This document shows, one piece after another, positions 42,111 to 56,492 of a stretch of DNA of 64,000 nucleotides (positions are counted from its first letter, which is position 1; each line of letters begins with the position of its first letter). The notes beneath the pieces were generated by a model. That model had not been told where the DNA came from. It made no database searches and worked only from the letters and a program-made list of their open reading frames with translations. The stretch lies in sequence record MK599315.1; one strand, written 5' to 3'. A program made the position numbers and the translations under genes.

Positions 42111-42578
42111 ATGGCAGTAACTCTTAAATTCCCTTTTATGCCGTCTCTTGAGCCAGCTGAGCTTACGGCTGTCATTCGCGATATCTATCTTGATCAATGC
42201 GCGGAGAAAGGCACGACTCCTCATCCCGAAGCATTTGAGCATCAGCCGGTTGTCCATGTAACGAATATGGTACATGGCGAGGGAGAAGATGTTCACTGGG
42301 CAGAAGATAGCGATAGCGAGAATCTACATATCTGCTTTACCTGCCCGCTGACTGGCGCACTTGCTAAGGTCGTCCAGCCTCTCAATTACACTGCCCCTAT
42401 GAACAAGGTGTGTGTACGTCTCTGGATTGAGCATATGCTGCTCACCATGTTGGAACTTTTGCTGTTTACTCAAATGCAAGAACAAATTACAATAATGTCC
42501 AATGCAGCAAGCGAACGACGTACTATCATAACTAAATCCATCCATGCAAAGAAGGAGCAACTCGATGCAGCTCAGTGA
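42111..42578 (+). CDS. hypothetical protein
   Basis: AGGA RBS, ATG 42111. Confidence 0.8.
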   Translation: MAVTLKFPFMPSLEPAELTAVIRDIYLDQCAEKGTTPHPEAFEHQPVVHVTNMVHGEGEDVHWAEDSDSENLHICFTCPLTGALAKVVQPLNYTAPMNKVCVRLWIEHMLLTMLELLLFTQMQEQITIMSNAASERRTIITKSIHAKKEQLDAAQ

Positions 42579-43095
42579 TCTACGTATCCCCACTGAGATC
42601 ATTCCTATTGGTCTGTGCTGTCTTTGGGCGCGCGAACAATACGTTGATCCAAATGGTAATTATCTATTCACTGCCAAAGAGGTTATTAGAGGTATCCATC
42701 TGGATAAGATGATGGAAGAGTTTAATAAAGCTATGCGTGAACATTTCTATCATAGCAACCACATCGAGATTACTCTCCATGGTATCGAAATCAAAGATAA
42801 CAAAGTCCATTACTTTCATCAAGAACCTGTTGTTGAGTTCTATGATGAAGTGAAAGCACAGTATTGCAACGTTGAGCTGGCTCGTTATGATGCTGATGTA
42901 ATGGACAAAGACCTGTTCTTTGATATGGTGTCGAAAGAAATCGCTGACCTGAGTAAGATGATCATGCAGCATATCTACTTTAAGTTTGACCGAGTACAAG
43001 CGGAGACCTGGTCTCGTTACCTGCTAGCACGTGGATCTAATAAAAGAAACGGGGCTGGTCTTGAGTCAGTTGACGTAGAAGTTAAACTCTCGTAA
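42565..43095 (+). CDS. hypothetical protein
   Basis: AAGGAG RBS, ATG 42565. Confidence 0.8.
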   Translation: MQLSDLRIPTEIIPIGLCCLWAREQYVDPNGNYLFTAKEVIRGIHLDKMMEEFNKAMREHFYHSNHIEITLHGIEIKDNKVHYFHQEPVVEFYDEVKAQYCNVELARYDADVMDKDLFFDMVSKEIADLSKMIMQHIYFKFDRVQAETWSRYLLARGSNKRNGAGLESVDVEVKLS

Positions 43096-43119
43096 AAGAA
43101 TACTTGAGTTGTAATGATA

Positions 43120-43490
43120 TACGAAGACTAATGTCCCAACAGAACAGAGGTCACCCGGATCATCTCCCCTAAGGCTCCCCGTCGCCATATTAGGGTGCCG
43201 CAGTGACCTCACCTTATTCCCACTAGCTTTCGGTGTAAGTGGGCTCTCTCCGCATAAGATCGGAGAGACTAACAGCGATCCATGCCAAAGGATCAAGCCG
43301 AAGCAGGTATATTGACTTGGCCGTCTTTATATCTGAAGTTACGACGGTTACTACCTCCAGTTGAGAGGGGTATCCCCGAGTGGCGTTACCTAACCAGATG
43401 GGTGCCGACCCGTAATCGGTGCCTTAGCTGGCCAGCTTTCTGGTAAGGTAATTTAACGAATAGCCCGCTCCGTTGAGGAGCGGGTTTTAT
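43120..43490 (+). ncRNA. candidate large structured ncRNA (about 340-370 nt)
   Basis: At least 8 helices in an ORF-free, GC-richer gap; promoter-like GTAATGATAT at 43111; terminator at 43463-43490. Confidence 0.6.
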
Positions 43491-43524
43491 TCCGCCTTAG
43501 ACCGCAAACAGGAGAATTTAAATA

Positions 43525-44202
43525 ATGACTATTGTCATATGGGATGGTAACGATCTTTTGGTTGATCGCATTACTACGATCACTCAGAGCGACATCACCG
43601 GAGCTGATGGTAAACCTCGGCCATACTACGTAGAACTTGATAACTCCAAGATCTATCTTGCCTCTGACCATAAGTGGGAAGCTAAGGTTTGGGGTAGGAA
43701 TATAAAAGCATTTACGATGGTTGGAGATACCGAGCATCGTCATTGCTGGCTTAATTTCCTGGAGACGGGTGACGATGTACACAGCTTAGCAGAGACAGCT
43801 AAGAATTTCCAGCACTTGCTGTCACCTAATGCGGAATACATCGTTATCGATGAAGACAATGTTCTTCATGTATTCGAAGCCACCCATGTAGAATTTAGGA
43901 GCAATTATTATTCCACTCCTGCACGTAAACCAATTATTTTTGGTTGCGCTGAAGCAGTTGAACTATTGAATAATGTATTCACCTCGGCTGAGAACAAACT
44001 GAGTCCGTTGGAATGTATGGTTATAGCTCAAGCGCACTATCCTGTACTTGGTCGTCGATTCGATCACTGGAATGCTGAATCGAATATACTCACACGTGAC
44101 AATGATCTTAGTGATCGGGCACGTCATTGGGTAGCAAGTCGGGCAGTGAAAAAGATATCGGTTAACTCTAAACCCCGTCCTGTCAATATCGTAAATAGGT
44201 AA
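43525..44202 (+). CDS. Ntn-hydrolase (HslV/proteasome-beta-like) family protein, possibly degenerate
   Basis: N-terminus MTIVIWDGNDLLVD resembles the phage MT(T/V)IAWDG..LAAD family; GGAG RBS. Confidence 0.5.
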   Translation: MTIVIWDGNDLLVDRITTITQSDITGADGKPRPYYVELDNSKIYLASDHKWEAKVWGRNIKAFTMVGDTEHRHCWLNFLETGDDVHSLAETAKNFQHLLSPNAEYIVIDEDNVLHVFEATHVEFRSNYYSTPARKPIIFGCAEAVELLNNVFTSAENKLSPLECMVIAQAHYPVLGRRFDHWNAESNILTRDNDLSDRARHWVASRAVKKISVNSKPRPVNIVNR

Positions 44203-55998: not shown

Positions 55999-56085
55999 TG
56001 GCTGGTAAGGTAGGATTCGAACCTACGATGGGCTTTCGCCAACGGATTAACAGTCCGCCCCCTGCTACCGCTCGGGTACTTACCA
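55999..56085 (-). tRNA. tRNA-Asn(GTT) with long variable arm (class II-like body)
   Basis: TGGTAAG/CTTACCA acceptor stem, G73, GCGGA-CTGTTAA-TCCGT, variable stem GGC-GAAA-GCC, CCA. Confidence 0.93.
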
Positions 56086-56130: not shown

Positions 56131-56492
56131 AGAATTATTAACAACTTCTTTCTTGTGGAAAAACCACAGGTAACTGAATTACAGTATTTCACTACATATT
56201 ATTACAATCTGAGTATTATTATTATTTCTTGTCATAACAAGAATGTAAATAACGTGTAGTTAACCTTATTATAAGTTATCGAAGTTACTAATTCTAACTA
56301 AAACGAACCACTATTACATCCGTACCAAAAGTATCTTCAACCCACTGGTTAAATTCTTTATCAGTGATACCACGTAGGTTCAAATTAAATAAAGAATTGT
56401 CAACAAGAATATATCGAACAGCTGAATTATAGTACTCTTAGATACCATAATCGTGTTAGATAATTATCTAAATAGTTATAAATATTATCATT

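Follow-up and report, generated by a model that had tools for sequence, protein, structure and literature searches.

The stretch of DNA considered here (64,000 nucleotides of sequence record MK599315.1, called the window below) derives from PA1C, its source being evident from 100% identity to MK599315; PA1C is a phiKZ-like (chimallivirus) jumbo phage of Pseudomonas. Between two plus-strand open reading frames (ORFs), at 42544-43095 and 43525-44202, lies a gap of 429 nt (43096-43524) in which the PA1C record annotates nothing. We found that this gap holds a member of a previously uncatalogued structured RNA family of nucleus-forming jumbo phages. A preliminary description, made from the letters of the window alone, had already proposed a structured RNA gene here, and the proposal stands: the plus strand of 43111-43490 folds with a minimum free energy of -139.4 kcal/mol (z = -4.44), which none of 100 shuffled sequences equalled, and covariation supports both the core module of the RNA (S1) and the helices H2 to H5 of its 3' domain (Table 1). 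The strand is established: the minus strand of the same interval gave a folding z of -2.82, and the plus strand alone fits the G-U pairs, the run of T residues in the terminator and the orientation of the promoter. The gap is also richer in GC than its flanks, as had been stated (0.54 versus ~0.40-0.44). We consider it very likely that the element is a real, functional structured RNA.

Covarying homologs of the element exist in 17 lineages, including phiKZ, PhiPA3 and 201phi2-1, all of which carry S1, and compensatory base pairs occur in this module as well as in the 3' domain. The covariance model R1 was built on 11 S1 sequences; in the alignment that it gave (A5), 96.5% of the cells were paired and 17 of the 20 base pairs had changed on both sides, while control pairings in which the partners were slid by 1-3 columns yielded at most 6 compensatory pairs. 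This alignment was fitted to R1, which favours the structure; the seven lineages outside the training set match R1 with E values of 1e-10 to 1e-21. The invariant bases of S1 are the unpaired ones, and these are C/U-rich (AUCUC, CCCGUC and the ACCU of the linker). Two partners proposed for them within the RNA were rejected, since the pairing of CCCGUC with GACGG of the 3' domain is not conserved in 201phi2-1, and that of AGGUG with the CACCU of the linker is not conserved in 201phi2-1 or in lineage L132 (labels of this form are our own). The small hairpin S0 that precedes S1 likewise shows a compensatory change, from C-G to A-U, in PhiPA3 (GGAA/UUCC).

S1 and a terminator make up the whole element in seven lineages (including phiKZ and Psa21), and S1 is joined to the 3' domain in nine; in L132, a ~200-nt AT-rich spacer takes the place of this domain. 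When folded independently between conserved anchors, the segments from PA1C, PhiPA3, 201phi2-1 and Viktualia gave the same series of helices. A model of H2 to H5 (R2), seeded from the PA1C group only, matches PhiPA3 (E = 7e-12), 201phi2-1 (E ~1e-4) as well as four phages of IMG/VR (E = 4e-5 to 1e-3); the match to Viktualia is borderline, and a partial one in phiKZ (L004:2787-2847, E = 0.58) was judged spurious. Across ten long forms, 90.8% of the cells in H2 to H5 were paired and 27 of 29 pairs were compensatory, against at most 10 in the slid controls. Within H5, the outer stem is 94.3% paired and the inner stem 100% paired, all of their pairs (7/7 and 3/3, respectively) being compensatory. 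H2 is paired in 70-75% of cells across all long forms, and on the sequences compared it appears weak or lineage specific. Its loop strand CUUUCGG is present in every long form found, and both this strand and CCGAAGC are invariant in PA1C, PhiPA3, 201phi2-1 and Viktualia. The two strands could form a pseudoknot, a candidate that covariation cannot judge because neither strand varies.

Beyond H5, the outer stem of H6 occurs in three versions: GUUAC/GUGGC (PA1C, 201phi2-1 and L154), GUUAC/GUAGC (PhiPA3 and L155) and GUUAU/AUAGC (Viktualia, L157 and L160), the last of which changes the closing pair from C-G to U-A. In H7, compensatory changes were found in the outer stem and hairpin 7a of HPP-Temi, the outer stem covaries in L160, and the hairpin with the GGCC loop is present in 9/9 long forms. 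PhiPA3 aligns weakly to a model of H6 and H7 (R3; E = 0.056), with all three H7 helices altered yet paired. Minus-strand matches to R3 proved to be palindrome artefacts.

The preliminary description had drawn nine helices, of which six are kept with compensatory changes in relatives: GAGGTCAC/GTGACCTC together with the CCCTAA/TTAGGG and GGC/GCC pairings that it encloses, TCTCTCCG/CGGAGAGA, GATCC/GGATC and GCCGA/TCGGT. For CCCACT/AGTGGG (our H2), confirmation is limited to Pawinskivirus and PhiPA3. Three pairings give way to others that covariation favours: in place of CCGTC/GACGG, the GTC pairs locally with GAC at 43314-16 in hairpin H5, and in place of CCAG/CTGG, the RNA forms AGCU-GGCC-AGCU while CUGGU pairs with ACCAG at 43394-98. 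Covariation likewise assigns TAAGGT, for which pairing with CCTTA or ACCTTA had been suggested, to UUACCU at 43386-91.

Table 1. Positions of the RNA element, its signals and the following gene in the window
Feature	Positions	Strand	Sequence or remark
phiKZ-type middle-promoter-like motif	43094-43122	+	A-rich run, TACT (43101-04), spacer, TGTAATGATATAC (43110-22)
S0, small 5' hairpin	43125-43136	+	GAC/GUC in PA1C, GGAC/GUCC in close relatives
S1 core, 85-nt four-tier hairpin	43137-43221	+	covariance model R1, 94.3 bits
S1 stem a	43147-54/43203-10	+	GAGGTCAC/GTGACCTC
S1 stem b	43156-58/43198-200	+	
S1 5' internal loop, conserved, unpaired	43159-66	+	A-N-N-AUCUC
S1 stem c	43167-72/43190-95	+	
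S1 stem d	43173-75/43184-86	+	
S1 apical loop, conserved	43176-83	+	U-N-CCCGUC
S1 3' internal loop, conserved, unpaired	43196-97	+	UG, opposite the AUCUC side
S1 3' linker, conserved	43211-18	+	ACCUUAUU; (C)ACCUAUU-like across members
3' domain, ~230 nt, multi-helix	43219-43451	+	nine lineages, always abutting S1
H2 hairpin	43219-43243	+	CCCACU/AGUGGG; loop strand CUUUCGG (43227-33); PhiPA3 CCCUC/GAGGG
H3 hairpin	43245-43268	+	UCUCUCCG/CGGAGAGA; 93% paired; 7/8 pairs compensatory, 10 long forms
H4 hairpin	43277-43294	+	GAUCC/GGAUC, CCAA(A)G-type loop; 95.7% paired; 5/5 pairs compensatory
Conserved strand	43298-43304	+	CCGAAGC; candidate pseudoknot partner of CUUUCGG (43227-33), one bulged U
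H5 two-tier hairpin	43305-43334	+	AGGUAUA/UAUAUCU + GAC/GUC closing loop UUGGCC
Conserved strand, then H6	43335-43385	+	GAAGUUAC; outer stem GUUAC (43338-42)/GUGGC (43380-84), variable interior
H7 three-way element	43386-43451	+	outer stem UUACCU.ACCAGA/UCUGGU.AGGUAA
H7 hairpin 7a	43400-24	+	
H7 hairpin 7b	43426-37	+	AGCU-GGCC-AGCU
Intrinsic terminator	43463-43490	+	GCCCGCUCC-GUUGA-GGAGCGGG, then UUUUAUU; T-run on plus strand only
PHIKZ289-family gene	43525-44202	+	225 aa; first gene after terminator

Every member found belongs to a Pseudomonas phage or to an uncultured relative, on contigs of at least 300 kb. Seven Pawinskivirus-like relatives are 90.7-97.9% identical to the element; in HPP-Temi, the RNA is 90.7% identical versus 81.1% for the surrounding 7 kb, and at the level of nucleotide identity the RNA is the most conserved feature of the locus. 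BLAST with the element returned only these close relatives and the first 160 nt of the PhiPA3 copy; the whole PhiPA3 intergenic region nevertheless aligns to the RNA over its full length, between a downstream protein that is 34% identical to that of PA1C and upstream genes that are unrelated. A profile of that alignment then matched the syntenic gaps of phiKZ (E = 2e-8), 201phi2-1 (E = 1e-6) and Psa21 (E = 0.015). The members in Viktualia, D6 and RVTF4 came from BLAST; that in L132 came from a protein search leading to a public read-set assembly (SRR8512233); and the L135 group, L137 and L143 came from metagenomes and IMG/VR through relatives of the downstream protein, gathered with a four-sequence alignment as query (the PA1C protein alone found nothing in IMG/VR). 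L154, L155, L157 and L160 were obtained by scanning IMG/VR with anchor sequences of the 3' domain. A loose pattern (ATCTCNC..CCCGTC..TGCC) gave chance matches in IMG/VR among the matches listed, none of which nhmmer found, and a strict S1 pattern gave 8 GC-rich chance matches in bacterial genomes, none of them a full R1 match. Across all collections searched, the element was seen only in Pseudomonas chimalliviruses. At the loci examined the 3' domain never occurs without S1, the whole phiKZ and PA1C genomes not having been scanned with R2 or R3 for detached copies. The RNA of 201phi2-1 (~287,060-287,531, plus strand) would be ~480 nt long, and the short form of phiKZ, which would measure ~115 nt, lies at ~263,179-263,300 of its record (plus strand), upstream of PHIKZ289.

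Sequence signals mark both boundaries of the RNA. Directly upstream of every member is a motif consisting of an A-rich run, (A)TACT, 5-7 nt, TGTAAT or TGCAAT, 2-3 nt and TAT, and it keeps this position though the upstream genes differ between lineages; the same promoter arrangement precedes the element in 201phi2-1, Viktualia, Psa21, RVTF4, D6, phiKZ, L137 and L143. Two copies of the strict pattern TACT-N4-8-TRYAAT-N2-4-TAT are present in the window, where 0.25 would be expected; the one not at this element precedes tRNA-Asn. In phiKZ, the middle promoter is a TACT motif centred ~22 nt upstream of the transcription start, with an A-rich repeat before it (Wicke 2021, PMC8244752), and because of this spacing the start of the PA1C RNA probably lies near 43123. 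The preliminary description had begun the RNA at 43111 with GTAATGATAT, a string that it also placed in front of the tRNAs. A second exact copy does lie upstream of tRNA-Leu (59053-62, minus strand), and as a 10-mer with one mismatch allowed the string is not enriched (9 matches versus 7.6 expected); judged by its place in the motif, it is part of the promoter and not of the RNA. Since the opening motif is promoter DNA, the RNA would run from ~43123 to ~43490, a length of ~365 nt in place of the ~350 nt first suggested. In PhiPA3, the stop codon of gp354 falls inside the promoter motif GTAATG.

The terminator at the 3' boundary, which had been recognized in the preliminary description, is confirmed, with its T-run on the plus strand only, and an equivalent hairpin followed by UUUAU(G/U)CCG occurs in every homolog. 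Chimallivirus terminators (window 43484-43494, L004:10859-10906 and all homologs) share the tail UUUAU(G/U)CCG(U/C), often followed by CU(C/U)AAGGAG; conservation therefore reaches beyond the hairpin and T-run. Depending on the lineage, S1 and the terminator are ~10 to ~250 nt apart. Thermodynamic prediction revealed no antiterminator in the seven short forms: S1 folds independently of the terminator, and when the RNA is truncated before the 3' half of the terminator, the 5' half stays unpaired, without an alternative partner.

The element does not appear to encode a protein. It had been called ORF-free, which holds with one reservation: mechanical ORFs of 41, 54 and 76 aa overlap it, none of them conserved. 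In a six-frame comparison of six lineages no ORF was conserved in frame; similarity tracks the nucleotides and jumps between frames, so nothing is conserved as protein, and insertions and deletions between homologs shift the reading frames. Short "hypothetical proteins" are annotated inside the RNA in the records of HPP-Temi (L003:2144-2361), HHBS36_1 (L005:444-569) and Viktualia (L130:2498-2948); being unconserved between lineages, these are probably mis-calls.

Nor does the element belong to a family in Rfam 15, as the preliminary description had anticipated. At gathering thresholds, the whole window yielded 8 tRNAs only, and at E values up to 10 the copies in PA1C, PhiPA3 and 201phi2-1 gave only weak matches, nearly all of them to the terminator hairpin and none anywhere near the gathering score. 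RNase P, tmRNA and group I introns, whose hallmarks had been reported missing, found no match, and the same was true of 6S RNA, group II introns, ROOL, GOLLD, HEARO, riboswitches and small ribozymes. A likeness to T-box or RNase P RNA was discarded, the strings UAGGGUGCC and ACAGAAC being unconserved in PhiPA3 or misplaced. An intron was rejected as well: the ORFs on either side are distinct genes that have their own stop codon or their own Shine-Dalgarno sequence and start codon, the downstream one comes after both the terminator and a Shine-Dalgarno sequence, lineages differ in having unrelated genes upstream, and there is no match to Intron_gpI.

In most lineages the element is linked to one gene family. 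A PHIKZ289-family gene lies downstream of S1 in 13 of the 17 lineages, and every locus that was fetched via the protein carried S1. The gene directly follows the element in PA1C, PhiPA3, phiKZ and L132, is preceded by a small hydrophobic ORF in Psa21-like phages, and is preceded by two ORFs in Viktualia and L154. In 201phi2-1, L155, L157 and L160, the full RNA is kept with no PHIKZ289-family gene downstream (from 5.7 kb in L160 to ~29 kb in 201phi2-1 was examined). The gene of 201phi2-1 is absent exactly between gp427 and gp428 (L013:18735-18909), which are homologs of the neighbours in Viktualia, where the gene is present (L130:3913-4611). In L132, two tandem diverged paralogs (23% identity; L132:5317-6675) lie behind one S1. 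The Psa21-like ORF between the S1 terminator and the protease-like gene is 56-77 aa long (L011:10438-10608, L012:10499-10732 and ~2290-2500 in L135-L143) and probably encodes a membrane peptide. Upstream genes differ between lineages, and Pfam and PHROGs searches with the flanking proteins were uninformative. One upstream gene, PhiPA3 gp354 (L001:2600-3004), is labelled "putative phage integrase," although it has no Pfam or PHROG match and no homolog upstream in PA1C; on both counts we dropped the idea that the RNA might guide a recombinase.

The protein encoded by the PHIKZ289 family has no sequence match in Pfam or the Protein Data Bank (PDB). However, an AlphaFold2 model of it (predicted local distance difference test [pLDDT] score, 79.5; predicted template modeling [pTM] score, 0.78) was matched by Foldseek to 20S proteasome subunits and Anbu with a probability of 1.0 and TM scores of 0.4-0.5. 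In an alignment of the family (A12), Met1, residue 2 (Thr, or Ser in PhiPA3), Asp14 and Lys42 are conserved, and M1, T2, D14 and K42 were called invariant. The Thr2/Asp14/Lys42 pattern and the match to an alpha-beta-beta-alpha sandwich fold together are those of an N-terminal-nucleophile (Ntn) threonine peptidase, which is the predicted activity, and we suggest that the family is a probable phage-encoded proteasome-like Ntn hydrolase or threonine peptidase. The literature searched on PHIKZ289/gp289, together with a comparative review of jumbo phages (PMC7824862), makes no mention of a proteasome-like protein.

Elsewhere in the window, similar signals are found near tRNA genes. The middle-promoter pattern (TACTCAGATTGTAATAATAT) at 56196-56215 (minus strand) lies ~110 nt upstream of tRNA-Asn (55999-56085) and suggests that middle promoters drive the tRNAs, which has been reported for tRNA-Leu in 201phi2-1. 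Just before tRNA-Leu in the window, another promoter-like motif (GAAGAATAACT...TGTAATGATATGTA; 59080-59050, minus strand) is followed by ~170 nt that lead to a terminator (GCCUCCCACUGGGAGGCUUUAU). The interval 59048-58872 (minus strand), over which several records annotate proteins, has a folding z of -3.0, and 120 nt of it show ~72% conservation among phiKZ-like phages; it is possibly a further noncoding RNA (ncRNA), like the small RNA (sRNA) that has been reported upstream of a tRNA in 201phi2-1.

What might the element do? We place about even confidence in the following reading, taken as a whole: the element is a discrete, terminated structured ncRNA that is also the leader of the downstream gene, and the loops of S1 bind a partner in trans. 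It would form an autonomous transcription unit of ~365 nt (~43123-43490, plus strand), transcribed by the phage's own RNA polymerase from a middle-type promoter, and would be modular, with S0, the universal S1, a ~230-nt domain of about six helices in some lineages and a strong terminator. Most transcripts would stop at this terminator, releasing a discrete stable RNA, whereas in read-through transcripts this RNA would form the 5' leader of the gene for the proteasome-like Ntn hydrolase. An RNA that sits between a promoter and a terminator ahead of a gene is by position a leader; moreover, the start codon of that gene comes just 34 nt after the terminator, which leaves no room for a promoter of its own, so expression of the gene from this promoter needs terminator read-through. 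The C/U-rich unpaired bases of S1 would be the likely surface for the trans-acting partner, be it a protein or a purine-rich RNA (e.g., a Shine-Dalgarno region), and the 3' domain would be a lineage-specific elaboration. Because S1 and the terminator fold independently, the element is not a conventional alternative-pairing riboswitch. This absence of alternative pairing, the variable spacing and the retention of the RNA without the gene favour a discrete terminated RNA, and the four long-form lineages that lack the gene indicate that the RNA is more than a leader. Several points weigh against this reading. Where transcription starts, how efficient the terminator is and how stable the RNA is are all matters of inference; the argument from the C/U-rich loops draws on a pattern of bases, and the binding partner is hypothetical; and the close association with a single gene family in most lineages is just as compatible with a leader that acts purely in cis. 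In addition, R3 missed the Serwervirus-like forms, so that the 3' domain is less uniform towards its 3' end than elsewhere.

Ranked by likelihood, the alternatives are a cis-acting operator, a scaffold or decoy, a ribozyme and, last, no RNA gene at all. The first, which is possible though on balance unlikely, is that the element acts purely in cis: S1 would be an operator or aptamer, bound by a protein, by the phage RNA polymerase or by some small ligand, and would set the read-through or translation of the protease operon, the released RNA being a by-product. Its position between promoter and terminator, directly before the gene, is what such a leader would have, as are the 13 of 17 lineages in which S1 precedes a PHIKZ289-family gene and the presence of S1 at all loci fetched via the protein; a protease plausibly needs tight control, and premature termination occurs in many 5' leaders of phiKZ (PMC10914365). 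However, no alternative pairing between S1 and the terminator was predicted in seven lineages, the distance between them is anything from ~10 to ~250 nt, and in four lineages the RNA is complete and its S1 loops are conserved where no such gene follows. A strongly covarying extra domain of 230 nt is also hard to explain as part of a by-product.

One broader, albeit speculative and in our view doubtful, possibility is that S1 is a new sensor or recognition RNA that couples a signal (a host factor, the noncanonical phage RNA polymerase or a metabolite) to expression of the protease and that has been extended in Pawinskivirus, PhiPA3 and Serwervirus into a larger self-associating (GGCC) scaffold, a decoy or a catalytic RNA. 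If true, nucleus-forming jumbo phages would possess a class of large functional RNA that is new and peculiar to them.

Two further alternatives concern the long form. It might be a self-assembling scaffold or decoy in the style of ROOL and GOLLD, multimerizing through its palindromic GGCC loop and sequestering a host or phage factor. The invariance of this self-complementary loop in all nine long forms, a second loop of the UGGCC type in H5 and the location of the gene a few kilobases from a tRNA cluster, as with many ornate phage RNAs, would suit such a role, which we nonetheless judge very unlikely: at ~365 nt the RNA falls short of the known cage formers, kissing through a loop of 4 nt is sterically unfavourable, and there is no similarity to families of the ROOL and GOLLD type. 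As unlikely, or slightly more so, is that the long form is a ribozyme (self-cleaving or other) or serves a ribonucleoprotein enzyme as its RNA subunit. The size of the long form, its architecture of many helices, the invariant single-stranded CUUUCGG, CCGAAGC and GAAGUUA, the GGCC loop and the candidate pseudoknot are suggestive of catalysis, yet no Rfam 15 ribozyme matched the PA1C, PhiPA3 and 201phi2-1 copies at E values up to 10, the universal core is a simple hairpin, seven lineages do without the 3' domain, and no exon, intron or mobile element flanks the RNA. Finally, we see almost no prospect that this is not an RNA gene and instead a long 3' untranslated region or spacer whose stability is accidental, an element that works as DNA, or several small ORFs (30-90 aa in some GenBank records, such as those of HPP-Temi, HHBS36_1 and Viktualia, and mechanical ORFs of 41-76 aa). 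More than 40 base pairs show compensatory changes between lineages, the G-U pairs would turn into mismatches if the opposite strand were the RNA, no ORF is conserved and insertions and deletions shift the frames, and a promoter motif lies directly upstream even though the upstream genes are unrelated.

The element occurs in phiKZ, PhiPA3 and 201phi2-1, which are leading models for phage cell biology and for therapy against Pseudomonas aeruginosa and whose RNA biology is almost unexplored. Nature has supplied a series of forms (the hairpin; the hairpin with an AT-rich spacer; the hairpin with the 230-nt domain), and the family is found both beside the protease gene and in its absence, so that function is approachable by swaps and deletions. 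There is also a practical point, namely, that spurious "hypothetical proteins" stand inside the RNA in several GenBank records.

In Rfam 15 and the papers that we searched, the family, its fold, its 3' domain and its gene linkage are undescribed. The closest precedents are the ncRNA candidates derived from 5' untranslated regions of phiKZ (Putzeys et al. 2024, PMC10914365) and the sRNAs of 201phi2-1 (PMC11512511), which the main texts of these papers present as short RNAs made by termination in 5' leaders. They come from the same phage family and share the layout of promoter, structured RNA, terminator and gene. They differ in that the one cross-phage family in those texts adjoins (upstream) the gp182/gp277 tail gene, a different locus, and in that the RNAs are treated there as single-phage transcripts; the main texts do not mention the present locus and contain no covariation family, 3' domain or link to PHIKZ289 (PMC10914365, PMC11512511). 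The ~480-nt RNA of 201phi2-1 would have been filtered out because that screen kept units of <250 bp (PMC11512511). The short form of phiKZ could be among the 17 candidates of that phage (PMC10914365), in which case its transcript would have been observed before.

With a riboswitch or attenuator leader, the element shares a conserved structured domain, a position between promoter and terminator, association with one gene family and conservation concentrated in loops. It differs in lacking mutually exclusive antiterminator and terminator pairings, in its spacing of 10-250 nt, in matching no Rfam riboswitch and in being kept where the gene is absent. Like ROOL, GOLLD, raiA, OLE and HEARO, it is a multi-helix covarying ncRNA, phage encoded and near tRNA genes, with invariant loops; unlike them, it is smaller, has a simple hairpin core that also stands alone, matches nothing in Rfam 15 and, in the collections searched, is confined to Pseudomonas chimalliviruses.

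Two better-understood systems offer hints about S1. The put RNA of HK022 is a cis-acting antiterminator that binds RNA polymerase, and S1 resembles it in being a stem-loop of ~70-85 nt with conserved internal-loop bases, placed right after a promoter and ahead of a terminator; the two have no sequence or detailed structural similarity, however, and because transcripts from upstream would also carry S1, promoter-specific antitermination of the put kind does not follow. RNAIII and the Rsa RNAs of Staphylococcus aureus use C-rich loops to pair with Shine-Dalgarno regions. The short form is similarly composed of a structured 5' domain and a Rho-independent terminator, with C/U-rich unpaired AUCUC, CCCGUC and CACCU, although there is no homology and sRNAs that act by base pairing are typically far smaller than the long form. 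As a covariation-supported family with defined boundaries in all three model phages, the element has support akin to that of many accepted bacterial RNA classes.

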